64,000 nucleotides of DNA, taken from IMG/VR virus record IMGVR_UViG_3300037725_000018, positions 1-64,000 of that record. The stretch is one strand, 5' to 3'. This document shows positions 3,464-47,238 of the stretch, in pieces. Both the position numbers and the translations under genes were made by a program. Below the pieces are notes generated by a model. That model had not been told where the DNA came from, made no database searches, and saw only the letters and a list, made by a program, of their open reading frames with translations. Numbering within the stretch: the first letter of the stretch is position 1; the number at the start of each line of letters is the position of its first letter.

Positions 3464-4198
3464 CTATTCATACGTACTTAAAAACCTTTTTGGAATGTCG
3501 TTGTGAATAACCCGCGTTTCCGGCCAAACGTCTCTTGCTCTTGGCTCTAACCCATAATAGTTAAATCCATGCAAATTCAACTTGTGTGCGATATAGCTTT
3601 GGGCGTCGTATCTCATGTATTGAGGCTCTTTTTGGACCATCGGGGTGTATCCATCTTTTTTCATAGCTTCAACGTCAATTACTAAGATTGCATCCCCGTA
3701 ACTACCGTTAAGAAGCCGATCCGGGGTCGTCACGGTAAACACCGCATTTCCGATGGACCTATTTTTTAGACCTCTTGTTTGGTTTGTAGCGTTTAAACCT
3801 TCATCTAAAATCTTATCTACATACTTCGGTTGAGTAGCATGGAAAAGTTCATACTCGGTTCTTCCGACGTTTTCCCAAAAACGTCTGTTGTAGATTTCCT
3901 TCCAGTCTACTTCGGTTTCTTCGTAAATTTCACCCAAACTGTACATGTCGCGCATAAACCAGTCTTCAATCCCACTCACTTCGGGGTATGAAGAATCCGG
4001 GGCGGTTATGATTTTATCCTCTTCAGGAAGAACGACGAACTTGTGTCCATTTAAAGTTTCTTCGGTGTAATCTACGCCTTCTTCATCTAAAACACTTAAA
4101 GCTTCCCGGTAATCAAGATCCCAAAAAATGTCTTCAAGTTCAGCGTCAGACATTCCATTGGACCTTGCCTCACGAAGTAAATCATTAAATCGAATCAT
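3464..4198 (-). CDS. Putative ADP-ribosyltransferase-fold protein with N-terminal leader
   Basis: LFHATQPKYVDKILDEGL, VFT, SYGDAILVID and IPKRFL motifs; leader MIRFNDLLRE. Confidence 0.55.
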   Translation of the reverse strand: MIRFNDLLREARSNGMSDAELEDIFWDLDYREALSVLDEEGVDYTEETLNGHKFVVLPEEDKIITAPDSSYPEVSGIEDWFMRDMYSLGEIYEETEVDWKEIYNRRFWENVGRTEYELFHATQPKYVDKILDEGLNATNQTRGLKNRSIGNAVFTVTTPDRLLNGSYGDAILVIDVEAMKKDGYTPMVQKEPQYMRYDAQSYIAHKLNLHGFNYYGLEPRARDVWPETRVIHNDIPKRFLSTYE

Positions 4199-4201
4199 AG
4201 T

Positions 4202-4300
4202 TCAAAGTTCAAATACTTGCTTTATTTTAGGTGGACGATTTGACTGGTTTTTACGGATTCTTTTGATAGCTTTTGAGATCCGTTTTTCGTTTTCAGTCAT
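4202..4300 (-). CDS. Small basic ORF (32 aa, not in the ORF track)
   Basis: MTENEKRISKAIKRIRKNQSNRPPKIKQVFEL fills the gap between flanking co-oriented genes. Confidence 0.4.
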   Translation of the reverse strand: MTENEKRISKAIKRIRKNQSNRPPKIKQVFEL

Positions 4301-4303
4301 AAC

Positions 4304-5053
4304 TTAAATGAAGTTTGGGTTATTTCGGACTCTAGCAACTTTCGAACGCCTACGTTTTTTGTATTCTTTTTCAGCGTCTTCACGGAGATCGTCCGGGTCG
4401 CTCATGTTTTCAACAACGTCTCCGGTTTCGTGTTCGGCATGAATCGCTCGGTTGATAAGATTGATTTTTTCTTTCTGTGGAAGCCTTCGTATGTTCTTTA
4501 AGTCTTTGTAAATTTCATATATGTCTTTGTGAACACCGTCTCCGAAAATTTGTTGAAGACGATCTACGTGTTCTTTCATCGCTTCAATCCAAACGTCTTC
4601 TTCTGTTGGGAAGGAGTACGGGTCGTCGGGGTCCATTTCATATTTGTCTGCCACCCGGTTATATATATCGGACCTTGAAACGTGATATCCCCATATCCGG
4701 TTATCAAGCTCTAACCTTTGTGGAATGGCTCTCCACTCTTCAAACGGGAGCTGGTAAACATCAATATTCATGCTTCTTAGACCCATTCCGATTCGTTCCA
4801 TATAGTCAGCATATGCTTCCCAACCTAAAAATCCGTGCTCCACGGACTTCCGGCGAAATGCTGGTTTAAGGATTTCAGCAATCCGTTCCCAATCGTAAGT
4901 GTCCCAATTGCCTGACATAGAACGGTAAAAATATTCCCGGACCATACCGTTTAAGTCGTCACGAAATATTCTTGAAGGGTCTTCTTTCTCCTGAAGGAGA
5001 AGGCTTACCTCTTCTCGAATTATTCTTCTAAGTCTTTGTTCGGAATTCATCAT
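4304..5053 (-). CDS. Hypothetical protein with IIREE leader (putative internal head protein)
   Basis: 249 aa; N-terminus MMNSEQRLRRIIREEVSLLLQE. Confidence 0.75.
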   Translation of the reverse strand: MMNSEQRLRRIIREEVSLLLQEKEDPSRIFRDDLNGMVREYFYRSMSGNWDTYDWERIAEILKPAFRRKSVEHGFLGWEAYADYMERIGMGLRSMNIDVYQLPFEEWRAIPQRLELDNRIWGYHVSRSDIYNRVADKYEMDPDDPYSFPTEEDVWIEAMKEHVDRLQQIFGDGVHKDIYEIYKDLKNIRRLPQKEKINLINRAIHAEHETGDVVENMSDPDDLREDAEKEYKKRRRSKVARVRNNPNFI

Positions 5054-5065: not shown

Positions 5066-5596
5066 TTATCTCTGTTGAGGAGTAACCGTATAACCTACAG
5101 GATCTCGCTCTACACTTGCGTTAGGAAAGCGATTTTTTATGAATTTAAGATAAAGACGTTCTCTTTGCTCGCTCCCACCACTAGAAGAAAGGCCACCACT
5201 CTTAAATGAACCTGCAAATGTGTATTTGTTATATTTTTCAGGAAAAATGCCCCGTTTTTTCATAGAGCCATGAAACTCTTCAACAATATTCATTACCGTT
5301 GCCATGACTTTGAAGATTTCGTTTTCGTTTGTTACCGTAGAAAAACTTCCATCAACAGAAAAGCTAACGTCTAAACTAGATTCGTCTTCACCATACTTTT
5401 CAATGGTGACTTGGTAGGCATTTTCGGGTGTAGAGAACTCGTATTTAAAGTATATCGGGTCAAGCCTAGACAGTATGTTTCTGTAGTTGAAGCCAGACCG
5501 GGTTTCACCAAGTTCATGAATTACTTGACGAATATACTCCCGAATGATGGATTCTTCTTTGGATTTAGTATTAAGCGATTTTTTCTTGCGTTTCAT
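5066..5596 (-). CDS. Hypothetical protein with leader-like N-terminus
   Basis: 176 aa; ESIIREYIRQVIHELGE, then FKVMATVMNI...RERLYLKFI. Confidence 0.7.
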   Translation of the reverse strand: MKRKKKSLNTKSKEESIIREYIRQVIHELGETRSGFNYRNILSRLDPIYFKYEFSTPENAYQVTIEKYGEDESSLDVSFSVDGSFSTVTNENEIFKVMATVMNIVEEFHGSMKKRGIFPEKYNKYTFAGSFKSGGLSSSGGSEQRERLYLKFIKNRFPNASVERDPVGYTVTPQQR

Positions 5597-6139: not shown

Positions 6140-6149
6140 CTATATATAG
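6140..6149. promoter_or_regulatory. Palindromic late-promoter-like site CTATATATAG between divergent genes
   Basis: Perfect 10-bp palindrome, about 30 nt from the 6111 (-) start and about 40 nt from the 6188 (+) start. Confidence 0.5.
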
Positions 6150-7097: not shown

Positions 7098-7874
7098 TCA
7101 AGAAAGCTTTGGTTGAACGTAACTTTCCCAATACCCGTATAGCCTGTTAATCAACCGCTTTTCCTGCCGTTTTGACACCGCACGAAGAAGTTGATCGGGC
7201 AAAAACTCCCCGAACACCCAGTCTTTGAACTTCCGGAAGTCCCCATTCCAGTTTCTTTTGTTTAAAGAGTTAAGGAGGCTAGGTTCACCGACAAGTTCTT
7301 GAACCTGTGCAACTGCCGATTGAAAGTAAGCGTTCACTTCCAAAGGGTCGGAAAAGTATGTTCTCCACTCTTCGCTTGAAATCTCTTTTGAGTCATACGT
7401 TGCAATTTGGTCAAGCCCAAGGTCAGTTCTTTTATCGTCTAAGTAGTGGATGTATTCGTGAATAACAAGATCAAACACATTTCTTAGGTTTTGAGAAATT
7501 TCACGTCTTATTTCTTTTTCATCCTTTTTATGCGGGTTGTCTTCAAGAATATACAACACAATGGCAGGGCCACCTTTAAGCTCGTTTGTATACATTCCAT
7601 CTGTTCGAGACTGGCTTTTTTCACCAAACACGATTCGAAGCGGATTTTTAGCTTCCTTTTCGTATTCTGTAAACCAATCGATCCGGACATACGGGCTGTT
7701 GTATCTCCCGATGTATTGGATCATCCCACCACTTTTTATGTACTCTAAGAGGCTTTCAAACACGTCAACGGCTTGTTTTCGCATTAGCTTATCCGTTTCC
7801 GCGTCTTCGGTTAAGCGGTAAGATACTCTGTGTTCAACTCTTTCGATAAGGTCTTTTTTACCCACCATAGCCAA
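7098..7874 (-). CDS. Zincin-like metallopeptidase
   Basis: VIHEYIHYLD (HExxH) plus downstream YFSDPLEVNAY; ATG start probably at 7868. Confidence 0.65.
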   Translation of the reverse strand: MAMVGKKDLIERVEHRVSYRLTEDAETDKLMRKQAVDVFESLLEYIKSGGMIQYIGRYNSPYVRIDWFTEYEKEAKNPLRIVFGEKSQSRTDGMYTNELKGGPAIVLYILEDNPHKKDEKEIRREISQNLRNVFDLVIHEYIHYLDDKRTDLGLDQIATYDSKEISSEEWRTYFSDPLEVNAYFQSAVAQVQELVGEPSLLNSLNKRNWNGDFRKFKDWVFGEFLPDQLLRAVSKRQEKRLINRLYGYWESYVQPKLS

Positions 7875-9120
7875 TGTAAATCTTTTTTGGAATCCGGTTC
7901 ATCATTTCTTGAAGATTTTGCTGCTGTTGGTTTTGCTCTTCAAGAAGATTTGTCCTAGAAAGCTGTTCAAGCTGTTCTCTTAGGTTGTTTTCAAGCTGTT
8001 CCATGTTCTGTTGCGCTTCCTGCTTTTGGCTTTCACCGTCAAGTTGAAGGTCAGCGCCGTTGGTTCCCGGAATAGAATTTCCGTACTTCGAGCGAACAGT
8101 TCCAAGCTTGTGTCTTGCAACTTCAAGTGCGTATTTGTAAATCCAACGCCTAGAAGGTTGGTTAATGTCTTCGTAGTGGTGAACGTCGTATGGAACATCT
8201 GAATAGTCGGAAACAACGTTTGCAATATCGGAGTCTACAACTTGAACGTTGTTTGCTTCGTCTTTGAACACATAGTCAAACCAGATCCTCCTTGGAAACG
8301 AGCGGTTTGGTTCTTCGTTGTCGTCGTTTTCCGGAATTGCGTCTCCACCAAAAAAGTCTTCTGTTCCCGGAATCGGCGTGATCGTAAGCACTCCGTTGGT
8401 AAGTCTGTACGTATATCCGGAGCGTCGAATCAAGTCGTTAAACTCAACCGCTTGCAAGCGAAGAAGATCATGGTACGCTGGCATCATAAGGTATTCAGAA
8501 GCCACGCCATAGTCGCTAAAGCCAAGTTCTCGAAGAACGTTTAGCGTTCCCACTCCCCCAACAGAGAATGGATCATAAAGCCTCTCAATGGCATGTGGAG
8601 GGTAGTAGTAAATCTTCTTGATGATGATCTCTCTGTCTTCAATTGGAACAGATCCGGACCTGTTTTTCTCTTTGAAAAGCTTTTTAATGTCGTAACGCTG
8701 TTTTCCGCGTTTGATGTTGATGAAATCTTTTCTCCAAGTTACACTTCCACCGTGTCCAACCTCGGACCCATAGGCTTTTGCAAGCCGAACCATTTCCCGG
8801 ACTGGAGATCCGGTGACGTGTTTCCCGGTTAAGTTTTCATATTCACCAATCTTTTCGTTTCCTTGAAGAATGATTAAGTTGTCTTTGATGTTAAGGTGGT
8901 TGACAAGCCTTGAAAATTCAAGAATCGCCTCTTCAATGGAGTTGTAAAGGTCTTTTTCATCGATCTCAATATCAACAGTCGGCCAACCAAGACGCCGCGC
9001 AATCCAATCTGCAATTTTGGGGGCGTCTTTAATGAAATCCGGATCTCCGTCAAAATAGCCAAATGAAGTTTTTCCAACGGGGTTTCCAAGCGTTCCGTCA
9101 AACTTTGTAGGTACAGCCAT
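7858..9120 (-). CDS. Neck / head-tail adaptor (T4 gp13-like)
   Basis: IARRLGWPTVDIEIDEKDLYNSIEEAILEF and WIYKYALEVARHKLGTVRSKY...LDGE; ATG at 9120. Confidence 0.75.
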   Translation of the reverse strand: MAVPTKFDGTLGNPVGKTSFGYFDGDPDFIKDAPKIADWIARRLGWPTVDIEIDEKDLYNSIEEAILEFSRLVNHLNIKDNLIILQGNEKIGEYENLTGKHVTGSPVREMVRLAKAYGSEVGHGGSVTWRKDFINIKRGKQRYDIKKLFKEKNRSGSVPIEDREIIIKKIYYYPPHAIERLYDPFSVGGVGTLNVLRELGFSDYGVASEYLMMPAYHDLLRLQAVEFNDLIRRSGYTYRLTNGVLTITPIPGTEDFFGGDAIPENDDNEEPNRSFPRRIWFDYVFKDEANNVQVVDSDIANVVSDYSDVPYDVHHYEDINQPSRRWIYKYALEVARHKLGTVRSKYGNSIPGTNGADLQLDGESQKQEAQQNMEQLENNLREQLEQLSRTNLLEEQNQQQQNLQEMMNRIPKKIYIGYGG

Positions 9121-9172: not shown

Positions 9173-9182
9173 TTATATATAG
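9173..9182 (-). promoter_or_regulatory. Candidate late promoter CTATATATAA
   Basis: Exact motif about 53 nt upstream of the gp13-like ATG. Confidence 0.55.
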
Positions 9183-14777: not shown

Positions 14778-16274
14778 GTGCCTAACAAGGAAGCCCCTTT
14801 ATCACAAAGCAAACAGGTTATGTCTTTTGACTGGAGCGATTACCAGAAACGGATCTTCGATTGGGGAATCAACGGGTCCGGAAACGCGGTTGTGGACGCA
14901 AAGGCCGGAAGCGGAAAAACAACCACGCTTATTGAGCTTGCACGTCGAATCAAAGAAGAGCGTGGAGAGGGTGGAGTTTTTGTTGCGTTCAACAAACACA
15001 TCGAGCGCGAACTCTCTGACAAGCTTTCCGATACCGATTTCATTGCAAAGACCGTCCACTCTTGCGGTTTCGGTGCAATCCGCTACGCCGGGTACGACGT
15101 TGACGTAAACTCTGATAAAATCAAAGACATCGTCAACGCCGTTACGTCCGATATGGCGTTCAAGAAAAACAAAAAGACGGTAAAGGCCAACCTTCGAAAC
15201 ATCGTTGACCTTGTTCGGCTCAATCTTGCGGACCCGTCCGATAAAAGCGAAGTTTTGGACGTTGCCCGTCACCACGGAATTTCCATTGAAGAGATTTTCC
15301 CGCTTATCGAAACGGTGATTAACCGTTCAAACAAGATTGCAAAAGAAAACGGGGAAATTGACTTCACCGACATGATTTATCTTCCGGTGAAGTGGAACCT
15401 TTCGATGTACCAAAACAAGTGGGTCTTCGTGGATGAAGCACAGGACCTAAACACTTGCACGCGCCGGGTGATTGACAAGATGCTTCGTCGGGACGGTCGC
15501 GCAATTTTCGTGGGAGATCCCCGTCAAGCCATTTACGGTTTCGCGGGTGCGGATTCGGATTCTTTCGAGCAGATCAAAGAAGAGTTTGAAACAACCGAAC
15601 TTCCGCTAAACATCACCTACCGTTGCCCGAAAAGCCACGTTGAAAACGTGCAACGCATTGTTCCGGAAATCGAGCCCCGTGAAAACGCCCCGGAAGGTAA
15701 AATCATCGAAGACAAGATGGACAGCCTACCGAACATTGCCGAAAGTGGGGATTACGTTTTGTGCCGCACAAACGCTCCGCTTATCCGGAATTGCATCCGT
15801 CTAATCAAGAACGGACAGCCTGCTCACGTGGTCGGACGAAACATCAAGCGGGGCCTTCTTCAAATTGCAAACCGGATTGATTTTGATAACTTCAACGAAA
15901 GCGTTCGTTCTTACTACCAAAGCAAGCGAGAGAAGCTTCTAGAGAACGATACGTCCGAAGAAAAGCTTCGGGCCTTCCGGGATAAGGTAGACGCCATTAA
16001 AACCGTCTACGGCGAATATGACGTTTCCACAAAGCGGGGTCTAAAAAGCAAGATCAAGTCCCTGTTCAAAGAAACGCCCGATTCGGTGAAGCTTATGACC
16101 GCACACAAGGCGAAGGGCCTTGAAAACGACCGGATTATCATCATCCGAACCGATCTTATGCCGCTTCGTTGGAAGGGTCAAAAGAAGTGGCAGGCAGAGC
16201 AGGAGATGAACCTGAAATATACAGCCGAAACTCGCTCTACGGATACGTTAATCTTCCTTCACCCTGAAAACTAA
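14778..16274 (+). CDS. UvrD/Rep-like superfamily 1 helicase
   Basis: AKAGSGKTT, VFVDEAQD, VGDPRQAIYGFAGA, TYRCPKS, TAHKAKGLE and YTAETRS (motif VI). Confidence 0.92.
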   Translation: MPNKEAPLSQSKQVMSFDWSDYQKRIFDWGINGSGNAVVDAKAGSGKTTTLIELARRIKEERGEGGVFVAFNKHIERELSDKLSDTDFIAKTVHSCGFGAIRYAGYDVDVNSDKIKDIVNAVTSDMAFKKNKKTVKANLRNIVDLVRLNLADPSDKSEVLDVARHHGISIEEIFPLIETVINRSNKIAKENGEIDFTDMIYLPVKWNLSMYQNKWVFVDEAQDLNTCTRRVIDKMLRRDGRAIFVGDPRQAIYGFAGADSDSFEQIKEEFETTELPLNITYRCPKSHVENVQRIVPEIEPRENAPEGKIIEDKMDSLPNIAESGDYVLCRTNAPLIRNCIRLIKNGQPAHVVGRNIKRGLLQIANRIDFDNFNESVRSYYQSKREKLLENDTSEEKLRAFRDKVDAIKTVYGEYDVSTKRGLKSKIKSLFKETPDSVKLMTAHKAKGLENDRIIIIRTDLMPLRWKGQKKWQAEQEMNLKYTAETRSTDTLIFLHPEN

Positions 16275-17395: not shown

Positions 17396-17406
17396 TTTAT
17401 ATATAG
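17396..17406 (-). promoter_or_regulatory. Candidate late promoter driving the endonuclease
   Basis: Exact CTATATATAAA, 31 nt upstream of the endonuclease ATG. Confidence 0.55.
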
Positions 17407-33037: not shown

Positions 33038-34871
33038 CTAAAACAGTTCCGTAACACTTGAAATCATTCGAGAAACTTTGTCTGCGTCGTTTGCTCCAAT
33101 GATAATACCGTTTGTTTCTCCGTACTCAACGATGTATACTCCAACGTCCATTGTCCGCTGGTCTTCAACGGCATAAATTTCAATGTCTCCACCCATTGTT
33201 CGAAGACTTCCGATCTCTTCCCGGATTTCAATTGGACCTACACCTTTGCCAACAACCTCTCCGGGAGACAGGTGGGATTCGGAGATAAGATTTGAAACTT
33301 CTTCTCGAATAATACGTTTAAGTTTTTGTGGAGACATGGATCTTTTGGTTTCAAATTAGTCAATCCAAAAAGACCTGCGCCTAAACAGGTCGTAAAAGAC
33401 TTCTGAAATTTCCGAACGAATGATTCGCCGGATCTCTTCTTCTTCGTCTTTGGAAAATTCTTCTTTGATAAGGGTGCGACGCACCTCGTCTTGAATTATG
33501 CGCCGCAACTTCGTACCCTCTTTATCTTTCATTTAAAATTGAAGTTATCTTCTATTTCACCTACCAAGTACCAAAGGTCGTTACTGGACCCGGTAGTTCT
33601 CGTTGATGTATGAAAGCTTCTCTTCAAGCTCGTCGTTGCTTAGGCTTTCAAGAAGGGCTTGGGTAAAGGAAACCTCTCCCATAAGTTGCCTCATCTTGTC
33701 TGCCTGTTCGTTAAGCCTTTGCCGTTGGGACTGTTTGTTTTCGTTTAGTCCTGCAAGCTCTTTGAATCGTGACTTCTTTTGTCCGTTAATAAGATTTCCC
33801 ATTGTACGTTTTATAAATTGTGTAAAGTGAATGAATCTTTAGATACACGTAAACTTTTAATGAATCTTCGTATGTGAACTTATCGCTCAACGTCAATAAA
33901 GTTTCGGATGTTCTTTGCAATCTTACCCGGTTCTGCGTCTGCTCCAAGCTTATCTTTTATTTCGTCTTCTCCGATTTCGCCGTCTTCAAGCCTTCCTTGA
34001 AGCCCCTCAAGATCGTCAGCAACGTCTTCAAGCTCATCGGTTTCATAGTCGTCAAAAGCCTTCCTAAAGTCTTCAGCGGTGTTTCCGCTAAGGTCTTTAT
34101 CTGCAACCCCAAGGTCTTCAAGCTCTTTTCCTATATCTTTTGTTTTCTTTTCGGTTTCGCCGCTAGAGTCGTCGCCTCCACCGCCGAACTTCTCTTTTGC
34201 TTTCTTCTCTATTTTTTTAGCTTTCTTGAAGGCAGGGTGTCCACTTCCATAACTTAGAGCGGTTTTTAGCTTGATTTCTTTTCCCGTTTTTGGGTTTTCA
34301 ATCTTGGTGTTATACACCTTTTTCATTTTCTTATTTTTCTCTTCTCTAACCACTTGACGGACCATCTTTCTAATACCGCGAATGGCCTTTTGCTTTTTTA
34401 CTTCTTCGTTTATAATTTGTCTTAGTCGTTTTCTCATTTTAACGTTTGAATAGTTTTATGTGTGTGTTTGTGTTTAAAACTTATTGAGTAATGAATTTAT
34501 TATGTAATGAGTTTTTTGACCTCTCTTCGAATGCGCTCGTCTTTTTTTGCAAGTGGGCCAAAAAACGCAAGAAAGTCTTGAATAGCCTCCGGGCTTGTAA
34601 CGTCTTGAACAAGCGTATATCCGTATTGCTTGTTAATCTTTTTTAGCTTTTTCTTTCTTTTTTCTTCATCTTCTTCGGAGTCCCCAGAAAACGCATACGG
34701 GGTATCATATCCCGGAACGTTCAACGTGGTCGTGGCCTCGTCTGTCGTTTCTTCGTTTTCCTCTCTGTCAGAGTCAACAATAATTGTTTTAATGTACTCT
34801 CTTAGCTTGCCTTTCGGGTATTTAAGAGAGGAACCCTTGCAACCGCAGTCTTCGTTAATTTTTTTTCTCAT
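33038..34871 (-). CDS. Five small head-cluster proteins (33038-33337, 33356-33532, 33581-33802, 33880-34437, 34500-34871)
   Basis: Leaders KLKRIIREE, KLRRIIQDE (58 aa ORF read manually), RFKELAGLNE, RLRQIINEE and KLREYIKTII. Confidence 0.7.
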
Positions 34872-35758: not shown

Positions 35759-35826
35759 CTTAGGTTTTTGTTAAATCTTCTTCACTTTATATATAGAAAA
35801 GTTACGTGCTCCTTTGTAAAAGAGTG

Positions 35827-37731
35827 TTACAAGGTTTCATCTAGCAATTCTTTGAGTCTATCATTTTTTTCTTCAAGGGCTGACTCGTCCATATATGTAT
35901 CTTTCATATGATCTTCGTTTCCTTCGTCTTCTTTGTCTTCGTCTTCGGTGTATGTTTCATGAATGAGCCGTCTTTTTCTGTTGAAATGTTTCTCTAAACT
36001 TGAAGAAAGAGCCATTGGGCTTCCTCCTTGGTAGTTGTGAGTTATATCCGAAGACTTGTTTCTAAGTTGATTTGAAAGGTCTTTCATTCCTGAAACATCA
36101 TCGTCTCCGCCTCCAAGATCATTTCCACCTTCATCTTTATCTAAGTCTTCTAGTTCGTCTTCGGTGTTGTCAATGTCGAAGTTCTGGATTTGTGAGCTTC
36201 CACTCATTGCCAAATCACTTGGCGTCCCGTAACTCATTCCCGTCTTTACGGGATCGTTGCCTTCACGTTCGATTTGATCCTTTCGGAAGTTTCTCTTCCA
36301 GTCCCGAACCTTCTCTTTGTATTCTTCATCGATTTCGTCTTCGGACATGTTAAACACTTCCTTTGCAATCTTTTCATCCGATAGGAAAGGCATTTCTCGC
36401 ATGTCACGCGCAAGACTAACCTTCCGGCTAAGAAACTCAATCCGTTCTTGTTCTGCAACAATGCTTGGGTTTGTAAACGAGAAGTTAAAGTCAATAAGAT
36501 CACTTCCCCTGTACCCTCGGACATACAGGTGAACAACGGCGATTTTTTTCAACTCTCTTGCAATAGACCGTTGAAGGTTTTCTACGGCGTTAGAAAACTT
36601 AATGGACTCTTGGGCAAGAGTGGCTTTTCCTTGAATTTCTTGTTCGTATCCTAAGAAAGCATTTGGAATCTTTAAAGCCGACATAAGCTTCTTCCGAAGA
36701 TACTCAACGTCTTCCATCGCTTGATATTGAAGGCCCTGAAGACTTTGAATTTCCGTTCCGGATTGGTTTCCCCGAACCGGAAGAAAAAAGTCTTCAAGCA
36801 TATTCTGCATGTTGAATTCCAAGTTGTATTGTCCCGTTTCCGGGTCAACAAGCGGGGTTTGCTGAATGTCGTTCATTACGTCGTTCATATAGCTTTCAAT
36901 TGCGTCAGGTTCGATGTTCCCAACGTCAATTTTGAAAACCCGCTTCTCCGGTGCCCTCATGATCCGGTGAATCAACATAGCCTCTTCCATCAAAGAAAGC
37001 TGTTGCCAAATCTTTCGGCCATTTTCAATGATGCTCTTCCCGTACGGAAAAAAGTTCCCGTCATTTATGAATCGAAAGTGTGCAACTTCCCATTCTTCAA
37101 AAGCAACTTGCCCTTGCGTGCTGCTTGTGTATGCGGACCCGTGGGCATTCCCTTGATAGACAAATTTAATCTCGTCTCCGTGGGTATCTTCTTGTCTTAC
37201 AATTTCATACGGGGAAAGTGGGGTAACTTTTGTCACTCCAACGTCTTCGTTGATCGTCATGTGAAGAAACAAGTCCCCATACTTTGCAATTGAGCGTGCC
37301 CACCACCGGGCGTTAAAATTCACATCCAGAATATTGAAAACTAAATTTTCAAGAACAGACTTGATTTCCCCATTTTCACACTTTACATCCAAAATCTGTC
37401 CATATGCGTCTTTAGTTGCAACTTCGTTTGCGTAAATATCAAGAGCAGATGCAATAATCGGGTCTTGGTCCATATCTTCATAGGTTTGAAAAAGCTCAAA
37501 CCTGTTTGCATGAAGAGCCTGTGAAGACGAGTATCCGCTTGAAGAGTAATGGCTTTGCCCGGACCCATAAAGCTTTTTGAAACGCCCGTCCGCAAGGTCT
37601 TGTGAAATAGATTGGCTACTACGTAAGTCTGCCGTTGTCACGTCCTCTCCATCCGAAGAGCGGACAATCACCTCGCTGGAAAAGAGACGTGAGAGGGCAT
37701 TTCTAATACTTCCTCTTGACTTTTCTGCCAT
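35827..37731 (-). CDS. Portal protein (T4 gp20-like)
   Basis: YEDMDQDPIIASALDI, LMEEAMLIHRIMRAPEKRVFKIDVGN and MLEDFFLPVR. Confidence 0.95.
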   Translation of the reverse strand: MAEKSRGSIRNALSRLFSSEVIVRSSDGEDVTTADLRSSQSISQDLADGRFKKLYGSGQSHYSSSGYSSSQALHANRFELFQTYEDMDQDPIIASALDIYANEVATKDAYGQILDVKCENGEIKSVLENLVFNILDVNFNARWWARSIAKYGDLFLHMTINEDVGVTKVTPLSPYEIVRQEDTHGDEIKFVYQGNAHGSAYTSSTQGQVAFEEWEVAHFRFINDGNFFPYGKSIIENGRKIWQQLSLMEEAMLIHRIMRAPEKRVFKIDVGNIEPDAIESYMNDVMNDIQQTPLVDPETGQYNLEFNMQNMLEDFFLPVRGNQSGTEIQSLQGLQYQAMEDVEYLRKKLMSALKIPNAFLGYEQEIQGKATLAQESIKFSNAVENLQRSIARELKKIAVVHLYVRGYRGSDLIDFNFSFTNPSIVAEQERIEFLSRKVSLARDMREMPFLSDEKIAKEVFNMSEDEIDEEYKEKVRDWKRNFRKDQIEREGNDPVKTGMSYGTPSDLAMSGSSQIQNFDIDNTEDELEDLDKDEGGNDLGGGDDDVSGMKDLSNQLRNKSSDITHNYQGGSPMALSSSLEKHFNRKRRLIHETYTEDEDKEDEGNEDHMKDTYMDESALEEKNDRLKELLDETL

Positions 37732-38800: not shown

Positions 38801-39103
38801 CTAACCAATCCGAACTTGAAAGTAAAACTGGTTGCCATACATTGCAACTTTCAAAATATCCATTCTTGCTCCATAAGAAAGGTCGTCGATGTTTAACTCA
38901 AAGTCTCGAACACCCGGCTTTAAGTACACCTCCCATGTGTCGTCTAGAAGCTGTGAAATTTGATCTACTTCGCGCCCTTCTACTCCGATTGCGCGTGTAA
39001 TAAGACGTTTAAGAGGTTCTGGATACTGCTCAAGGTTCTCTTGTTCTTTGATTACACGTCTTGTTTCTTTTTGAATAATTCTTCTAAGTTTTCTTTTGTT
39101 CAT
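38801..39103 (-). CDS. Leader-bearing small protein
   Basis: MNKRKLRRIIQKETRRVIKE. Confidence 0.75.
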   Translation of the reverse strand: MNKRKLRRIIQKETRRVIKEQENLEQYPEPLKRLITRAIGVEGREVDQISQLLDDTWEVYLKPGVRDFELNIDDLSYGARMDILKVAMYGNQFYFQVRIG

Positions 39104-39166: not shown

Positions 39167-39562
39167 TTAGTAAATGTCAATAACAATGTCGCCAGACTTC
39201 GGCTTAAAGTTTTCTTTTCTCATAACCGTAATTACGGTAAGAGCAAGAACCGAAGGATCTCTTGTTCGTTCTAAAACTCCAACCAAGTTTAAATCATAGG
39301 TATTATCTCGAATTACGAATTCGTCGCCCACGTCCATCCGGTTATTGATTAGATACTGAAGAATCTTGTCGGACGCCTCTTCTGCCGTTGCAATAATTTC
39401 TTCCTCGTCAATTTCGTTTCCCTGTCCGTGGCGAAACCTTCGTTCATCTGCATGTCTAGACAAATCAACATTGACTTCAATTGTAACGCTCTCCAAAAAT
39501 TTGCCAATTGAACGCTCGGCAATTTTTTTAGTAAGCTCTTCAAGCATATCGTTTAACTTCAT
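39167..39562 (-). CDS. Leader-bearing protein with RelE/BECR-like RNase motifs
   Basis: LSRHADERRFR and C-terminal VITVMRK. Confidence 0.45.
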   Translation of the reverse strand: MKLNDMLEELTKKIAERSIGKFLESVTIEVNVDLSRHADERRFRHGQGNEIDEEEIIATAEEASDKILQYLINNRMDVGDEFVIRDNTYDLNLVGVLERTRDPSVLALTVITVMRKENFKPKSGDIVIDIY

Positions 39563-39825
39563 GACTTTTTACGTTTGGTTTTCTTTCTTTTTCTAGAACC
39601 TTTTTTGTAGCTACTTTTTTTCCGGTGAGCTTTTTTGGCTGCCTTCGAACGCCTTCTTTTTTCTTTACTTGACATTCGGACGCACCGACCATCTTTTGCT
39701 TTCTTACCCTTTGGGCAGTCAAGCTTACGGACTTTCTTCCCGTTTCTATAAACGGTTTTGTACCGCGCTTCTTCAATTTCTTTTCGAATAAGTTTTCTTA
39801 GTCGTTCCCTTGTTAATTTTTTCAT
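39559..39825 (-). CDS. Basic prohead core protein (T4 gp68-like)
   Basis: VYRNGKKVRKLDCPKGKK...CVRMSSKEKRRRSKAAKKA after an IRKEIEEA leader. Confidence 0.6.
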   Translation of the reverse strand: MKKLTRERLRKLIRKEIEEARYKTVYRNGKKVRKLDCPKGKKAKDGRCVRMSSKEKRRRSKAAKKAHRKKSSYKKGSRKRKKTKRKKS

Positions 39826-40044: not shown

Positions 40045-41703
40045 TTAGTTGAAAAGCCAAGAAATGTCTTCTCCACTCGAAGGGTCTCGATACGGATTCC
40101 CCCTGTTTTTTCCAGAGGAGATTCCGGAACTTGGAATTTGCTTGCTTGGTGAGTTTTTGTTTTTGATTCCCTTCACCATGCCTTTGTTCATTTCTTTTTC
40201 GTTGCCAAAGACTCGGATAGCTGTATCCCGGCTCCAAAACGCAAACATCGTAGCAAATATCAAGTCGTCGTAAAACCCGTCAAGGTGTTCTGCCCGTTTT
40301 GAAGTTTTCCACACAAACGTTTTAAGCTCGTCTACAAGTCTAGACGAGCGAATCGTGGCGTAGTCTTTTCGGATAAACTCTTCAAGCTTCGATACAAGAA
40401 GCGGTCTTGTTTTTCTTGTTGTTTTAAGTCCCGGATACACCTTCTTTTTAGAAGAAACGTTTGCGTTCACCTCAACAATTTTAAAGTCGCTTGACGTATA
40501 AAGAAGATTCTTGTAATCCATGTCAATGAGCCGTTGAAGGGTTGTAAACCCATAATTGTTTCTCTCGACAACGGCTAGAGCTTGATTGTAAATGTTTCCA
40601 ACTTTGTATATTTGTTCACCAAGCTGGTCTGGAGCGATTCTTGCTCTGTATTCTGCAACTTGTTCTATCTGTTTGGTTGTGAACACCTGAAAAGTCGAAA
40701 AGTCGCCTTCATCGTCCCCCCTTGCAACATCTGCGGATATGATATAATTTGTGTTCGGTTGTGGCTCTTCCCAAACCCAGAGGCTTGTTCCCGCAAGAAT
40801 TGGAACCTTATACTTTGGCTTTGAAACCGTGTGTTCTTCGATGGATTCGATCCGGTCCATTTCAATTACAGTTGTACCGGAACTGGAGAAATCGCAATCA
40901 TATTCTCGTTTTGCTTCCTTTTCCGGAAGCTTTTCCCCCTGCTCTTTTCTCCACTGCGCGTCTCTATCGGGGTGGAGGCTCCAATGAAGTTTGATCGGGT
41001 GAAAACCGTTTTCTCCTTCTCCAACCCACTTTTCTTTGTTCGGTGTGTCGTCTACCATTTCTGCTCCGTTCACCGCCTTTTGCCATACTTCATGAAACCA
41101 ATTCCCGATGTTCTCAGGCGTTGAAAGCACGACAGAACTTCCCCCGGACTGTGAAAGCGTAGCTTGAACGCTAGCCCAAAGGTCACGGGCACCGTCGATA
41201 AACGCGGCTTCGTCAATAATTAAAAGAGAAAGAGACTCGGATCGGCCCGCATTTTCTGTTGTGGTTTCAGCGGAGATTTGACTTTGATTGTCAAGCTCCA
41301 TCGAAAGCCTGTTATCACGCACTTTTTTTCTTCGAAAAAACGAAGGCAAGTTGTCGTGCATGATTTTGGTTTTTTTCACCAAGTTGGCTGCAACGCTTTG
41401 TTTTAAGGCCACAACCAAAATGTTTTTATCGGTGTTGAATACCATAAGCCAAAGCGCGTACGCCGCCATAAGCGTCGATATACCCATTTGACGGGCTTTT
41501 AAAATAACGTTGAAGCGGTTATTTTCAATCTCTTCAAGCGTCCTTTCTTGAAACGGGTAAAGATCAAACGGAATCTTTCCCTTCTGTTGATCTTGAATCA
41601 TGCAGTACTTCCGCATGAAATACTCGGGATTAGTTGCACACTTTAGGTACTCTTCCCGCTGGTTTTGAAGGATTTCTTTCCGTTTGTTTGACTGATTTGA
41701 CAT
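40045..41703 (-). CDS. Terminase large subunit (T4 gp17-like)
   Basis: LKARQMGIST (Walker A), LLIIDEAAF (Walker B), LSTP, ISADVARG and DDLIFA. Confidence 0.95.
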   Translation of the reverse strand: MSNQSNKRKEILQNQREEYLKCATNPEYFMRKYCMIQDQQKGKIPFDLYPFQERTLEEIENNRFNVILKARQMGISTLMAAYALWLMVFNTDKNILVVALKQSVAANLVKKTKIMHDNLPSFFRRKKVRDNRLSMELDNQSQISAETTTENAGRSESLSLLIIDEAAFIDGARDLWASVQATLSQSGGSSVVLSTPENIGNWFHEVWQKAVNGAEMVDDTPNKEKWVGEGENGFHPIKLHWSLHPDRDAQWRKEQGEKLPEKEAKREYDCDFSSSGTTVIEMDRIESIEEHTVSKPKYKVPILAGTSLWVWEEPQPNTNYIISADVARGDDEGDFSTFQVFTTKQIEQVAEYRARIAPDQLGEQIYKVGNIYNQALAVVERNNYGFTTLQRLIDMDYKNLLYTSSDFKIVEVNANVSSKKKVYPGLKTTRKTRPLLVSKLEEFIRKDYATIRSSRLVDELKTFVWKTSKRAEHLDGFYDDLIFATMFAFWSRDTAIRVFGNEKEMNKGMVKGIKNKNSPSKQIPSSGISSGKNRGNPYRDPSSGEDISWLFN

Positions 41704-41723: not shown

Positions 41724-42320
41724 TTACCCGTGAAGAAGCTTTCTTTCACTTTCTCGGATCGTGCTATTCCAAAAAGATTCTCCTTCATCTTTTTCGAGAG
41801 GACTATCCGGACGTGCTCTTTTTTTCTTTGTTGAAAGGTCTTTGTCCGGGTCAAAAGCCGTAGAGGGGCCACCGCTTACGACAACCCCTCCACCGTTTAC
41901 GTCAAGTTTTTTCCGGAGATTTTTAGCCTTCTGTGGGCGAGCCTCTTTTTCTACGTCTCCAAAAAAGTCGTTTGACATGACACTTCGATTGTTTGTTTAA
42001 AGATTTTCAATATCTTCTCGAATCTCTCCAAGACGCTTGACAATTCTTGAAATTTTGTCGTTGTTTGAACCGTCTGCAGCTTCCCGGAGAAGAGAAACAG
42101 TTTCGTCAATGCTTTCGGTAACAATGTCGAGTTGGCCTCTCTTCATGTCTTCAAGACCTCTGTACGTAAAGTCGTCTTGTCTTGAAGGAGAACTCATGTC
42201 GTGAATTGGTTGAAGCCCAACCATTCCACCTACGGCCTCGTCAATTTGTCTTTTTGAAGAAGTTTGTCTGCGAATCTCGCGTTCTACAAGTCTGCGAATT
42301 TTTCGTCTATTGATTTTCAT
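41724..42320 (-). CDS. Two small proteins (41724-41978; leader-bearing 41997-42320)
   Basis: Second ORF begins MKINRRKIRRLVEREIRR. Confidence 0.6.
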
Positions 42321-43365: not shown

Positions 43366-43734
43366 CTACTTTTTTTTTGCTCTTTTCACCACTTCTCGAA
43401 CGGCTTTTTCTTTGCTTACTCCCCGTTCCATAAGCTGACGAACCGCCCGTTTGAACGATTCAAGCTTTTTTGAAGATTCGTTTAAGCCATCTTTTCTTTG
43501 AACGTAGTCTTTAGCTTGCTCGATAGCTTCTTGGTCTTTTGTATCCGTGTCTTCGTTCCATCCTAGGCTAACAAAGTCGAAGAACTTTTTCTTCTCTTTA
43601 TCATTTAATTCTTGTGGAGAATCAATTCCAAACACGTCCATCATCTGTTTGAAATATTTTTGGTACTCCGTCTCTTCATTTAAAATTTTTGAAACCTCTT
43701 CTTGAATGAAGCTTCTAATTTGATCTTTATTCAT
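43366..43734 (-). CDS. Leader-bearing small protein
   Basis: MNKDQIRSFIQEEVSKILNEE. Confidence 0.75.
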   Translation of the reverse strand: MNKDQIRSFIQEEVSKILNEETEYQKYFKQMMDVFGIDSPQELNDKEKKKFFDFVSLGWNEDTDTKDQEAIEQAKDYVQRKDGLNESSKKLESFKRAVRQLMERGVSKEKAVREVVKRAKKK

Positions 43735-43813: not shown

Positions 43814-44236
43814 TTAGTTGTTGTCTTCTACGTTTACACCGATAGGTGGCTCGTAAATCACAAGCATTTTTGACCCGGCCTCGGACACGTCCTCGACAGA
43901 GTGTTCAACCCCACACGGAACGTATATGCTATCTCCAGAGGATAGGATCTTTGTCTTGTCTTTAATTTCATACTTTAGCTCGCCTGAAATAACAATTGAA
44001 AGTTCAGACTTGTTGGGATGGGAGTGGTCAGGTAGGCTACCGCCCGGATCTACATTTTCAATCCATCCGTCAATATCTTCTCTTTCGATAACGGACTTTA
44101 TCTTCCACCCGTCTTGAATTTCTATGGGCTCGGTTGTATACGGAATATTACTTACAAACCCTTCTCTATATTTCGTTTCAAGTCGGGTCGAAAGTTCCGA
44201 TTGTAAGCTAAGTATTTTTTCGTGTTTTTCACTCAT
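43814..44236 (-). CDS. Cupin (RmlC-like) domain protein
   Basis: PDHSHPNKSELSIVISGE and GDSIYVPCGVEH. Confidence 0.85.
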   Translation of the reverse strand: MSEKHEKILSLQSELSTRLETKYREGFVSNIPYTTEPIEIQDGWKIKSVIEREDIDGWIENVDPGGSLPDHSHPNKSELSIVISGELKYEIKDKTKILSSGDSIYVPCGVEHSVEDVSEAGSKMLVIYEPPIGVNVEDNN

Positions 44237-44521: not shown

Positions 44522-44589
44522 TGCAAAATATGATGTTTCTTTGAAATTTAAAAAATAACCAGCGCAGGTGTCGGTTTCATTGTTACCGC

Positions 44590-45243
44590 TTACTGTTCTT
44601 CGTTTTCTTCCTCAAGTTGTGCAACTTCTTCTTTTAGGTTTTCAATTTTTTCTTCATACAAAGAAACAAATTCCTCAAAATCTTCTTCTAGTTGATTTAT
44701 ATCCGGCCCACCAGACCAAACTTCCATTCTTCCTTGAGGATTTTGAACGTACTCGTCGTCCCCTTTTTGGCTTTCTAGAAACTCTTGAAACTCTTTCTTT
44801 TGGTCTTCAAGCCAAGACTCGATGTTTTTGATGGTACGCTTTTTGTGGTAAAGCTCATATTCTCCGCGAGCCCGGAGCGTAGATTCAAACTCAATCTGGC
44901 AGTCAAAACAATGTCCGTGAATCTTATATGCTTTTTTGTCGTTTCTGTGATTCATAATTGATCCACATTCAGGGCAAAAAAGCGGCGTGCCAAGAGACTC
45001 GGTTGACTTTCCGTGACGGATCGAGTACCCTTTCTTCCGCTCCCAAAGGTCGCCTTTATCGTCTCTCCATGTGTCTCCGGGCTCGACGCCTTCAGGAACA
45101 ACTTCCTTCACTCTTACGTTTGTAGAAGAATCTTCGTCAAATCCAATTTGAAGCTCTTCGTCTGCGGGGTTTTCCCCTTTAAGAATTTCGTAAAGCGCAT
45201 CCCGCTCTTGCGGGGTTGTAATCATGTCTTTTTTATCTGGCAT
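44590..45243 (-). CDS. Zinc-binding hypothetical protein
   Basis: FCPECG...HCFDC; promoter-like motif at 45273-45283. Confidence 0.75.
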   Translation of the reverse strand: MPDKKDMITTPQERDALYEILKGENPADEELQIGFDEDSSTNVRVKEVVPEGVEPGDTWRDDKGDLWERKKGYSIRHGKSTESLGTPLFCPECGSIMNHRNDKKAYKIHGHCFDCQIEFESTLRARGEYELYHKKRTIKNIESWLEDQKKEFQEFLESQKGDDEYVQNPQGRMEVWSGGPDINQLEEDFEEFVSLYEEKIENLKEEVAQLEEENEEQ

Positions 45244-45312
45244 AACAGTTGTGTTTTTGAATTTATCTTCACTTTATAAATAGCGAAAAAAGGTAGTAGG
45301 CTGTGTTTTATG

Positions 45313-47238
45313 TTAAATCAAGTCGTTTTCGTTAAGAACGTATCGTTTTTCTGAAATTGGCTCTTTAACGCCTTTAGATTTATACGGCGCAAACGCTTTC
45401 TTTTGATTTAGCTTTTGCTCTCCGCTTTCATCGGTCACATAAACAATCGAATCTTTGTCGGCATTTTGTTTTTTAAGGACATTTTGAATCCCGTTTTTAA
45501 GGTTTTGCCGCTCGATAAGATGAACGTTCCTGTTTCCGAACTCTTCATGAAGTGCCTCGCGGATAATCTTTTCTTTCATTGTCGGCCCGTGGTTAGAAAT
45601 CGGGTACACAACAACTTCTTCTCCGGTAGCCACTTTTTTCATGTGCCCACGCCGGATGGACTCTCCAAGCACGTTTGCTACTTCGGTGTCGCTTTCTCCG
45701 TGCCAGCGAATCGTTTCAACCCGATCAGATGGAGAGTTCACCGTTTCAACAGCCCCGGCTTGTCCTTTAAGTTGTGCAAGTCTCCCACTCTCTACTTCAA
45801 CTTCATCTCTAGGATCTGTGGACGGTTCATAATTCGGGGCGATCTCGCTTCCTAGGTAGTCGATAATCTCAAATCCAAGTCCGCTTGCCAAAGCGTCAAC
45901 AAACGGATAGTAAATTGTCTCCGGGTTTTCAACGGGTGTAGATCCGGTTGCCCCTGTAGGGTAGAAGGAGTCAAATGGAAGTCCATCGGTCTTTAACTCT
46001 TGATCTTCATCTGCCTTTCCAATATCGTCAAGAAACTCCCAACCGATTTTATTTGCAAATTCTTCATGGTATTCCTCATATACCCCTTGATTGTGCCACC
46101 AAGTTGTAGGCCCGTCGTCAACAGGCACGAGAGAGGTCGTAGAGGCTTCAGAAAGCATTTTCTTTGTTTTCTTGACCACTCCCCCGATGTTACCTTTCGT
46201 CTCTTTTAAATACTTCTCAAACACTTGGTCTTGAACAATCTTTGAATCAAAACGGTCGTTGATAAGAGAGAACACCGTCTCGTCAAATGATCCAAATAGC
46301 TCTTTGAAGACTTGCTTCTTTGTTTTTTCTTCAACGTCGGAACTTGAAAATATCTTTGAAATTTTCGATTCTTCAACAGATGTTTCTTTGATTGTTACAC
46401 TTGCGTCTTCTACTTCGTAATAGTAAGACTGCTCTTTATACGGTTTTAGATCTGAAGAATCGTATTCTTCAAACAGATCAGAGACGTCTTCGGACTCTTT
46501 TAGTTTTTCAACGTCGCTTTCTCCAAGTGCTGCAACAAATACCGTTTCTTCTTCGTCGTGTCCTTCTAAAACTTCTGTGGGGTTCCAGCTATTTTCAACT
46601 TCGTGAATTTGTTGTTCTGGAATTGGATACATCCGGGTCATTACTTTTCTCTTATCGCTAAACGACAAAGGATTTGACTCGTTGGTTCTATCGCTTGTCG
46701 CAAGATAAACGTTGTGAACCCCAAACTTCTCAACAAGATTTTCGTAGATGTTGTAGTGCTCTTTGTGAAACGGCTGAAAAACGCCAGAGTATACAACAAC
46801 GTGGTTTAGGTCGTCTGTGTTTTCGTTGACCTTATTTACAGCATCCCGGACCTGTTCAACGGCACTTTCTCCCGAAAGGTGGACCCGAACAATAGGAAGG
46901 CGAACGTTTACTTCGTCTTCTTCGGAAATTTGAGTAGCGGCGATTGCTCGGTGGTGCCCGTCAACTACTTTGTAATCTTCGGAGACAAAAACTGTCCGGA
47001 CTTTACCCTCTTTCCGGATCTTTTCTTTTAGAGAGTCTACCTTATCGGAACTATAATCGTCTTGAAAGCTTTCAAGTTCGGTGGGAGATATCTTTTCTCT
47101 TGTTACCAAGACGCCGTTGTTTTCCAAGACGTTTACAACGTCTTGGGTTTTTCCACCGTCCACTTGAGGCATATCCTCTCGCTTAATTTCACTTAGAACT
47201 TGCGCTGCAATTCGTTTTGAAAAATCCTCTAAACTCAC
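45313..47238 (-). CDS. ParB/Srx-like domain fused to a cytidyltransferase-like (HxGH) domain
   Basis: VVDGHHRAIA and YSGVFQPFHKEH; degenerate second transferase-like segment at the C-terminus. Confidence 0.7.
   Translation of the reverse strand: MSLEDFSKRIAAQVLSEIKREDMPQVDGGKTQDVVNVLENNGVLVTREKISPTELESFQDDYSSDKVDSLKEKIRKEGKVRTVFVSEDYKVVDGHHRAIAATQISEEDEVNVRLPIVRVHLSGESAVEQVRDAVNKVNENTDDLNHVVVYSGVFQPFHKEHYNIYENLVEKFGVHNVYLATSDRTNESNPLSFSDKRKVMTRMYPIPEQQIHEVENSWNPTEVLEGHDEEETVFVAALGESDVEKLKESEDVSDLFEEYDSSDLKPYKEQSYYYEVEDASVTIKETSVEESKISKIFSSSDVEEKTKKQVFKELFGSFDETVFSLINDRFDSKIVQDQVFEKYLKETKGNIGGVVKKTKKMLSEASTTSLVPVDDGPTTWWHNQGVYEEYHEEFANKIGWEFLDDIGKADEDQELKTDGLPFDSFYPTGATGSTPVENPETIYYPFVDALASGLGFEIIDYLGSEIAPNYEPSTDPRDEVEVESGRLAQLKGQAGAVETVNSPSDRVETIRWHGESDTEVANVLGESIRRGHMKKVATGEEVVVYPISNHGPTMKEKIIREALHEEFGNRNVHLIERQNLKNGIQNVLKKQNADKDSIVYVTDESGEQKLNQKKAFAPYKSKGVKEPISEKRYVLNENDLI

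Follow-up and report, generated by a model that had tools for sequence, protein, structure and literature searches.

The first 64 kb of IMG/VR record IMGVR_UViG_3300037725_000018 (the window; the whole record is 223,357 bp and is estimated to be complete) encode T4-like virion genes on the minus strand, and among these genes lie many small ones whose products open with one of two short N-terminal leaders, denoted class A and class B. An earlier note on this DNA had claimed that about 20 late proteins share such leaders, and had read them as a capsid-targeting and injection system. Across the whole genome, taken as 362 genes called by our own heuristic, the sharing of leaders proves to be far from chance; the word 'late', by contrast, we infer from co-orientation with structural genes and from a candidate late promoter. 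The class A consensus is (K/R)L(K/R)RII(R/Q)EE(V/I), and that of class B is MIRFNDLLRE. In a comparison of all 362 N-termini made with no prior motif, only these two large classes emerged. The all-against-all comparison gave 59 pairs above threshold, as opposed to 2 for an internal control segment, and joined class A and class B genes in a single cluster of 19, with nothing comparable elsewhere. The window holds 12 clear class A genes, 4 clear class B genes and several looser variants, and about 10 more leader genes lie outside it, for a total of roughly 25, or some 7% of the genome's genes. The leader genes of the window are listed below with the evidence for each: translation, a hidden Markov model (HMM) built from the leaders, a profile built from the leaders of other phages, and other criteria as named. 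A slash marks an actual or putative cut, and genes are referred to hereafter by their starts, the higher coordinates.

4304-5053, minus strand: class A, 249 residues (MMNSEQRLRRIIREEVSLLLQE...), between sheath and neck genes; translation, HMM
27455-27784, minus strand: class A, 109 residues (MKISQRKLKRTIREEV...); translation, HMM, other-phage profile (E 8.7e-4)
28028-28588, minus strand: class A, 186 residues, basic cargo (MRLSKRKLKRIIREEV...); translation, HMM, other-phage profile
28633-28923, minus strand: class A, 96 residues (MRLSRRKLRRMIREEL...); translation, HMM
30575-30904, minus strand: class A, 109 residues (MKISNQKLQKIVREET...), with an in-frame ATG upstream at 30937; translation, HMM, best match of the other-phage profile (E 9e-8)
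33038-33337, minus strand: class A, 99 residues (MSPQKLKRIIREEVSNLISE...), directly upstream of the protease gene; translation, HMM, other-phage profile
33356-33532, minus strand: 58 residues, two class A copies (KLRRIIQDEV, EIRRIIRSEI); two HMM domains
33880-34437, minus strand: 185 residues, two tandem class A-like copies (RLRQIINEEV, MVRQVVREEK); translation, HMM, N-terminus comparison
38801-39103, minus strand: class A, 100 residues (MNKRKLRRIIQKETRRVIKE...), promoter-like motif GATATATAA at -59; translation, strict regular expression, HMM
39559-39825, minus strand: class A, 88 residues, very basic Cys-containing cargo (MKKLTRERLRKLIRKEIEE...); translation, strict regular expression, HMM
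41997-42320, minus strand: class A, 107 residues (MKINRRKIRRLVEREI...); translation, HMM
43366-43734, minus strand: class A, 122 residues (MNKDQIRSFIQEEVSKILNE...); translation, HMM, other-phage profile
5066-5596, minus strand: 176 residues, extended class A-like leader (..ESIIREYIRQVIHE/LGE), cargo weakly DUF6934-like; cargo homology to class B proteins
3464-4198, minus strand: class B, 244 residues (MIRFNDLLRE/A...), possible ADP-ribosyltransferase-like C-terminal half; translation, N-terminus comparison
30318-30575, minus strand: class B, 85 residues (MITFKDILRE/K...), start overlapping the stop of the upstream class A gene; translation, N-terminus comparison
31908-32309, minus strand: class B, 133 residues, acidic (MIRLNSLLKE/A...), start overlapping the protease stop codon, which is the T4 scaffold gene 22 position; translation, N-terminus comparison
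39167-39562, minus strand: class B, 131 residues (MKLNDMLEE/L...); translation, N-terminus comparison
29878-30294, minus strand: variant leader, 138 residues (MKFDKLVSLLVEE...); translation
30930-31901, minus strand: loose leader, 323 residues (MNSKDFIRSLIHE/A); hydrophobic-x-x-hydrophobic-hydrophobic-x-Glu ending at residue 13

All twelve class A starts and all four class B starts named in the earlier note translate as it had described, with two copies each at 33532 and 34437. The looser versions that it named fared unevenly: 5596 was validated by the homology of its cargo to class B proteins, 31901 carries FIRSLIHE/A and 30294 is a variant, whereas 34871 is weak. Every leader in the window begins at the first Met or no more than 8 residues from it. 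A strict class A regular expression, [KR][LIM][KR][KRQ][LIMVT][IVL][RQK][EDK]E, applied to six frames of the whole 223-kb genome, gave 8 matches, all of them in the window, on the minus strand and 7-17 codons past a stop codon. The HMM added N-terminal class A copies outside the window at 67111, 70134 (two copies) and 133582. Class B numbers 9 genes, with 0.9 expected by chance, and its copies beyond the window lie at 65699, 71829, 72329, 130864 and 199350.

Leader genes are concentrated in the head, neck (sheath-neck) and baseplate regions, the baseplate module lying at 64-74 kb, after the window. These regions hold 21 of the 24 leader genes counted, among 67 genes, compared with 3 among the 295 genes elsewhere (Fisher p = 3e-14, with the region boundary drawn after the data had been seen). 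The three outliers, away from structural genes, are 130864, 133582 and 199350. None occurs in a plus-strand block of 27 non-structural genes at 9-24 kb.

The leader is not confined to this genome. In contigs fetched through the protease gene, small open reading frames (ORFs) near that gene start MKITKxQLKQIIKEEL, and class A of the window (RKLKRIIREEV) is a more basic and divergent form of the same sequence. The exact pattern, back-translated from 15 residues, occurs in at least 120 IMG/VR stretches, often as tandem arrays of 2-4 genes, and in 0 of 185,579 prokaryote genomes. Ten large contigs were found by the leader alone; 8 of them carry a protease 47-60% identical to that of the window, and the other two are fragments. 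Searched against 1.84 billion representative proteins, the class A profile returned 10,896 clusters at E<=0.001, and the 10 that were looked up are all metagenomic and unnamed. When the profile was built from other phages' leaders only, it retrieved 7 leaders of this genome at E<0.01, six in the window (30904, 33337, 28588, 5053, 27784 and 43734) together with 67111; the remaining window leaders are divergent relative to it. Neither Pfam nor PHROGs has a family covering the leader, and a literal search of a paper library for the motif strings returned no relevant paper; the earlier note, too, knew of no formal description of the IIREE class. A tblastn search of the phage collection with the 22-residue leader gave no match, the query being too short for that database. 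In the loci of marine relatives, class B was not found beyond the near-identical kin of the window.

Alignment of the class A leaders delimits the element. In 327 leaders, information content is approximately 2-5 bits per position for residues 1-16, with the exception of variable position 6, falls to 0.3-0.8 for residues 17-22 and is nil beyond. About 44% of the large leader set (154/345 unique leaders) had been gathered with the exact pattern, which inflates positions 1-15; the 187 leaders not matching the search pattern nevertheless retain L8 in 98%, I11 in 84%, I12 in 91%, E14 in 97% and E15 in 94% of cases. The residues that replace Glu at position 15 in these 187 are mostly small (A, T, S, V, M or N), and A, T, S and V are what one would typically expect just after a cut. 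Asp never occupies position 14 or 15 in the same 187 leaders, yet is common at 17-24. In 98% of leaders a tripeptide L/I/V-x-E closes at residue 14; a further copy closes at residue 22 (32% of leaders), 21 (15%) or 18 (13%). Class A mostly reads IIRE at 11-14, and class B has its L/I-x-E at residues 7-10, as LLRE, ILRE or LLKE. The amphipathic leaders are rich in charge, with K/R and E throughout, and contain no hydrophobic run. A Sec/Tat signal peptide was considered and rejected, because the leaders lack the uninterrupted hydrophobic core of about 10-15 residues that such a peptide has behind its basic N-region.

Selection acts on the peptide, as synonymous codons vary freely. Copies in the window write identical residues with differing codons, and among 337 unique leaders from related contigs I12 is ATT in 164 and ATC in 146, E15 is GAG in 208 and GAA in 129, and I3 is ATC in 160, ATT in 107 and ATA in 26. 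Some sites are skewed, with CTT at 67% for L8 and GAA at 93% for E14. Upstream of the ATG, only a Shine-Dalgarno-like stretch at -13 to -9 is conserved, which indicates that the leader starts are real translation starts; in relatives, 386 of 432 matches start exactly at a Met preceded by such a stretch.

What follows the leader is almost unconstrained. In 1.7 Mb of related loci, 344 unique class A proteins (median 112 residues) fall into 232 cargo clusters, 203 of them singletons, which bears out the claim that the sequences after the leader are unrelated. Pfam and PHROGs searches of the cargos returned almost no family, and most are orphan ORFs (ORFans); among the 50 longest class A cargos there was one Pfam domain match (YkuD). 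Cargos are mostly either acidic or basic. Comparison of close strains locates the junction. Between the window and a 90%-identical contig (L002), DNA homology breaks off at 28864, after exactly 20 codons of the 28923 gene and thus at the end of its leader; past this breakpoint the two leader genes of the window give way in L002 to a single gene, in which the same leader precedes another cargo, and the 28588 gene is missing there. The junction resembles the cargo swapping at T-even internal-protein loci. In another relative (L046), the whole double-leader gene 33880-34437 is missing. On these alignments, the leader-coding DNA is a boundary for cargo swapping, or recombination, between strains.

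The leader classes themselves are interchangeable, as homologous cargo occurs behind either a class B or a class A-like leader. Five paralogues share the weakly DUF6934-like cargo: four (65699, 71829, 72329 and 199350) start MIRFNDLLRE, and the fifth, 5066-5596, has ..SIIREYIRQVIHE aligned there. Its cargo matches those of the four class B paralogues at E 3e-25 to 2e-6, and its YIRQVIHE aligns with FNDLLRE so that leader E28 falls on class B E10. Similarly, the gene right after the protease gene, which is the T4 scaffold position and often overlaps the protease gene, has a class B leader in the window, and class A or related leaders in relatives (for example, LKPLIKEC and WRDFLIES). Homologues of the 29878-30294 cargo in contig L005 and in Microcystis phage Mel-JY01, where it is the gene after the protease, have other leader-like N-termini. 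Leader-cargo units can also be chained, two to four in a row: three metagenomic database proteins (P0013, P0015 and P0016) are single ORFs with 3-4 such units and may be polyproteins. Some of the internal leaders lack Met (GKTKITKSQLATIIKEEL, RENKITKSKLAQIVQEEL) and therefore cannot be translation starts, which fits polyprotein processing.

Few cargos offer a hint of function. The class B protein 3464-4198 matches Pfam Tox-ART-HYD1 with E 7.8e-4, below the curated cut-off, and language-model features match it to three families of ADP-ribosyltransferases (Arr, DarT/PARP and HYD1); no solved structure matched in a profile search, and its AlphaFold2 model was unusable (predicted local distance difference test, pLDDT, 34.5). 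Its faint ADP-ribosyltransferase likeness, a possible parallel to T4 Alt, is best taken as a lead. The class B 130864 protein (L070:959-1864, G000 129959-130864, minus strand) is a Zeta-toxin-type P-loop kinase of the phrog_5268 type (PF06414, E 5.3e-7), and the class A 67111 protein (L069:2728-3111, G000 66728-67111, minus strand) has a HiPIP-like Cys motif (PF01355, E 1.3e-5). Orthologues of 4304-5053 (44-48% identity) retain the leader and L20-x-E22. An AlphaFold2 model of this protein, made with a 10-sequence orthologue family (pLDDT 77.8), shows the leader as a separate helix of lower confidence, residues 4-22, ahead of a helical domain that has no fold match in PDB or BFVD.

The leader genes are interspersed with the following virion genes.

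388-2514, minus strand: tail sheath, T4-like
7858-9120, minus strand: neck adaptor, T4-like
24048-25763, minus strand: major capsid protein, gp23-like, 571 residues (phrog_138, E 1.9e-71)
25841-27256, minus strand: putative scaffold by position and composition, 471 residues, very acidic, with many L/I-x-E sites and MLKE/A at residue 13
32309-33007, minus strand: gp21-type prohead protease, 232 residues (phrog_207, E 8.5e-56)
35827-37731, minus strand: portal protein, gp20-like (phrog_213, E 1.8e-73)
40045-41703, minus strand: large terminase, T4-like
51856-52908, minus strand: fibre-like protein

The protease, which the earlier note had identified as gp21-like, is indeed of gp21 type: a tblastn search, which matched 2630 phage records, gives 36% identity to T-even gp21, and phmmer matches it to T4 gp21 at E 5e-25. 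The putative scaffold gene lies directly upstream of the capsid gene, and its product has no family match. No gp24-like vertex paralogue that could bear a leader was found. The closest cultured phages are Mel-JY01, with a protease 56% identical to that of the window, and Flavobacterium phage immuto (48%); DNA similarity between cultured phages and this genome is negligible.

The motif CTATATAWA occurs 9 times in the window, with 0.3 occurrences expected, and a motif scan places it at the following sites.

353-361, 6141-6149, 9174-9182, 17398-17406, 27417-27425, 35788-35796 and 52935-52943, minus strand: CTATATAWA

These sites precede structural genes (neck, scaffold-capsid, portal-adjacent and fibre) by 30-160 nt; genome-wide, the isolated leader genes 70134, 130864 and 133582 are likewise preceded by the motif. 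CTATATAWA is a candidate late promoter that would differ from the TATAAATA of T4, and late expression of the leader genes is plausible on this ground. The T4 late promoter itself is not clearly enriched (4 matches, 1.1 expected).

Several neighbours of these genes deserve mention. A ribosomal protein S21 homologue (PF01165, E 2.8e-12; 27790-27996, minus strand) is encoded within the head module, with class A leader genes on both sides, and Mel-JY01 has an S21 homologue at the equivalent place. A cupin-domain protein (PF07883, E 2.5e-17; 43814-44236, minus strand) lies among the leader genes upstream of the terminase gene. Adjoining the terminase region, a 641-residue protein (45313-47238, minus strand) combines ParB-like and cytidylyltransferase-like parts, and the Mel-JY01 head module has an equivalent annotated as cytidylyltransferase-like. 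At 52934-56107 (minus strand), a single ORF of 1057 residues fuses an N-terminal metallophosphoesterase (SbcD/gp47-like) to an SbcC/gp46-like ATPase, unlike in T4 and cyanophages, where the two are encoded by separate genes. Two ORFs flanking the plus-strand block, 16271-17365 (minus strand) and 23152-23985 (plus strand), have N-termini that look by eye like GIY-YIG homing endonucleases (YYVYALVHE..., IYEIRNTKTERSYIGST...); the former has a CTATATATAAA motif upstream.

Against this background, the leaders may be set beside the cleaved peptides of T4. In the T4 record, these are MAKINELLRE/S in gp24, MKTYQEFIAE/A in the internal proteins IPII and IPIII, MELITELFDE in Alt, MLKEQLIAE/A in gp22 and FGSFLTE/A in gp23. 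Alt is processed at ITE-6 and, C-terminally, at LTE-619 (PMC5694885). The first 10 residues of IPIII suffice for packaging; in the T4 capsid-targeting sequence (CTS), targeting is sensitive to residues 4 and 7 and processing to residues 8 and 10, and Asp at position 10 blocks processing but not targeting (PMC9026906). The conserved F4, L7, L8 and E10 of class B are these targeting and processing positions, and class A has the same CTS spacing, shifted by four residues, in L8-x-x-I11-I12-x-E14. The capsid protein of the window carries YQQLVNE63/A (its LVNE63/A is named in the earlier note), which aligns on the gp23 cut site FGSFLTE65/A. One pattern, hydrophobic-x-x-hydrophobic-hydrophobic-x-Glu, is common to the two leader classes, the two capsid-protein sites and the majority of T4 propeptides. 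In this genome, 37 genes have it ending no later than residue 16, with about 10 expected, although roughly nine of them fall in an unrelated class of small proteins, described below. In an in-register BLOSUM comparison with MKTYQEFIAEA, class B proteins rank among the top of the 362 genes (scores of 10-16 against a mean of -2.9, sd 6), the peptides being too short to settle homology. The LIKEE of T4 gp67 was also tried as a leader match and agrees at chance level only.

A third N-terminal class, M-I-I-V-V-x-E-x-E (MIIVVIERE, MIIILSETE, MIVFVVEST and others), is unrelated to the leaders. It is found on many plus-strand proteins of 50-70 residues, at 13993, 19531, 21382, 22143 and 22720 and also at 156-176 kb of G000; these look like small non-structural proteins that open with a beta-strand.

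That the leaders exist, are N-terminal, modular and interchangeable, are selected at the peptide level, lie among virion genes and co-occur with one protease clade is directly observed. The reading that we favour is that both are T4-type capsid-targeting propeptides removed by the gp21-type head protease, which on the comparisons above is probably correct. Class B looks like a plain member of the known T4 kind, and class A would be an extended variant, undescribed as far as we have found, that uncultured marine T4-like phages use on a very large scale. During head assembly, a freshly synthesised protein would be docked on the prohead core or scaffold by its leader, a short amphipathic helix at the N-terminus. 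The protease would then cut after the Glu of hydrophobic-hydrophobic-x-Glu, E10 of LLRE/ in class B and E14 of IIRE/E in class A, often with a back-up L-x-E site near residue 22, and the cut would release the cargo inside the head. Since Asp at the T4 cut site blocks processing, its absence from positions 14 and 15 favours Glu-specific cleavage. Some leader proteins may be prohead core or scaffold parts, to be degraded rather than injected; other cargos would remain with the DNA and exit at infection, like the internal proteins and Alt of T4. As to the capsid-targeting and injection system of the earlier note, the sequence tests favour targeting and processing and point only faintly to 'effectors': the step from head-targeted to injected proteins is the least supported part of the reading.

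Several observations weigh against it. Profiles of class A and class B do not retrieve T4 CTS, core proteins or internal proteins, so that the likeness lies in pattern and register. Four window leaders (IIQKE, LIRKE, LVERE and IIQDE) have no Glu at position 14; in these the first cut site is missing and a downstream L/I-x-E, which each of them has, must be invoked. The tripeptide L/I-x-E turns up often in helices rich in Glu. In class A, the conservation of residues 1-7 and 15-16 goes far past the needs of a cut site and suggests another constraint. Several leader genes belong to the baseplate rather than the head module, and the leader HMM finds class A-like helices at the C-termini of two proteins at 207-209 kb. 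Class A is absent from T4, Syn9, P-SSM2, HTVC008M and S-RIM2, with weak matches only in Mel-JY01 and immuto, and no cultured phage with class A was found. A similar protease (48-56% identity) is present in the nearest cultured relatives, which lack class A; having such a protease is thus not enough to determine the leader.

The two C-terminal cases are unusual in their own right. The adjacent proteins (L071:10462-11981, G000 207462-208981, minus strand) share a repeated module, W.DISRT..DG.HP.CG...YPKCVPK, each copy of which ends in the class A-like helix (LRTFIRKEIHKALN, LRKVVREEIKRQIGK). In the second protein, the YP/C junction seems by eye to be split by an intein-like insert (CVPLDS...ITGN/S).

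Much of this unfavourable evidence would sit comfortably with an uncut leader that serves as a docking or oligomerisation helix for a virion or assembly partner, such as scaffold, portal, tail lumen, baseplate or chaperone, and makes its bearers permanent minor virion parts or assembly factors. Such a helix could explain conservation across class A residues 1-16, well beyond the cleavage site, the hydrophobic pairs every four residues, which suit packing into a helix groove, leader genes in the baseplate and neck regions, leader-like helices at C-termini, and close relatives with a similar protease but no leader. We nonetheless think it unlikely. The strict Glu at 14/15 and the lack of Asp there, with Asp common downstream, are predicted by a Glu-specific protease and not by simple packing; the register equals that of the cleaved T4 propeptides and of the capsid-protein cut site; and the leader-cargo chains are polyprotein-like. 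Less probable still is a leader unrelated to the virion, that is, an N-terminal module that directs small proteins to a single target in the cell (a host protease or chaperone adaptor, as a degron or timing device, or else ribosome, polymerase or membrane). The cargos are indeed mostly small ORFans, as host-takeover proteins are, three leader genes (130864, 133582 and 199350) lie away from structural genes, and a virus-only motif fits any phage-specific function. This explanation is countered by the concentration of leader genes among head, neck and baseplate genes and their absence from the 27-gene plus-strand block, by the translational coupling of some leader genes to the protease gene, and by the promoter-like motif that isolated leader genes share with structural genes; the likeness to T4 propeptides would then be coincidence. 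Conservation in DNA or RNA, in the form of a start cassette that spreads (a ribosome site followed by A-rich first codons) or of a hot spot for recombination, with the peptide as by-product, could draw on the recombination boundary in the leader-coding stretch and on the codon skew at L8 and E14, but is largely refuted and very improbable, given that synonymous codons are free at fixed residues both in related contigs and in the window, that only a purine-rich, Shine-Dalgarno-like stretch is conserved upstream of the ATG, and that internal and C-terminal copies exist.

The propeptide reading can be extended into a bolder proposal, which we advance tentatively: in a major clade of uncultured ocean T4-like phages, a universal MKITKxQLKQIIKEEL tag, recognisable from sequence, may load hundreds to thousands of unrelated small proteins with rapid turnover, leader-cargo chains among them, into heads for ready-made delivery to the host. 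Were this so, metagenomes would suffice for a catalogue of the injected proteome of marine phages, whose size and variability would go far beyond the T4 model. If the propeptide reading itself holds, the leader would be a label for proteins that travel in the capsid, marking about 7% of this phage's genes and more than 10,000 protein families confined to uncultured marine viruses, and a large part of viral 'dark matter' would become open to functional study for the first time. It would point to a large, rapidly exchanged stock of pre-made proteins acting at the onset of infection (for example, counter-defence or host-takeover factors), with cargo genes that evolve by swapping behind a constant leader. 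Class A would also provide a second, longer tag for packaging foreign proteins into T4-like heads.

Among known systems, the closest is the CTS of T4, borne by IPI, IPII, IPIII, Alt, gp24, gp22, gp67 and gp68. There, too, a short N-terminal peptide (10-20 residues) that ends in hydrophobic-hydrophobic-x-Glu stands on otherwise unrelated proteins, with a gp21-family protease in the same genome. Class B equals the gp24 peptide MAKINELLRE at 6/10 positions in the same register, cargo genes in both systems differ between close strains with the leader-coding DNA as the junction, and one class B cargo may be an ADP-ribosyltransferase, as in Alt. The present leaders differ from the T4 CTS in that class A extends four residues further N-terminally, is basic (MKITK / RKLKR) and is conserved through residue 16; in that T4 has about 10 cleaved proteins, as against roughly 25 leader genes known here from sequence; and in that several of these leader genes lie in the baseplate module. 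The inner-body or ejection proteins of phiKZ, 201phi2-1 and SPN3US form a second comparison, as many are processed after Glu by a gp21-related protease, with redundant cut sites per propeptide. Their cleavage motif is (S/A/G)-x-E, their propeptides mostly exceed 100 residues, and the SPN3US paralogues gp53 and gp54 share an identical 15-residue N-terminus containing cut sites (PMC5694885). The leaders described here, by contrast, have Ile, Leu or Val two residues before the Glu and are only 10-22 residues long, and the head genes of this phage are T4-like, which sets it apart from that group. Encapsulin cargo-loading peptides offer an analogy only: a short terminal peptide, at either end, directs diverse cargo into an HK97-fold shell, as the leader-like helices at some C-termini here recall, but these peptides are not removed by a protease, are unrelated in sequence and are encoded in genes beside that of the encapsulin shell.

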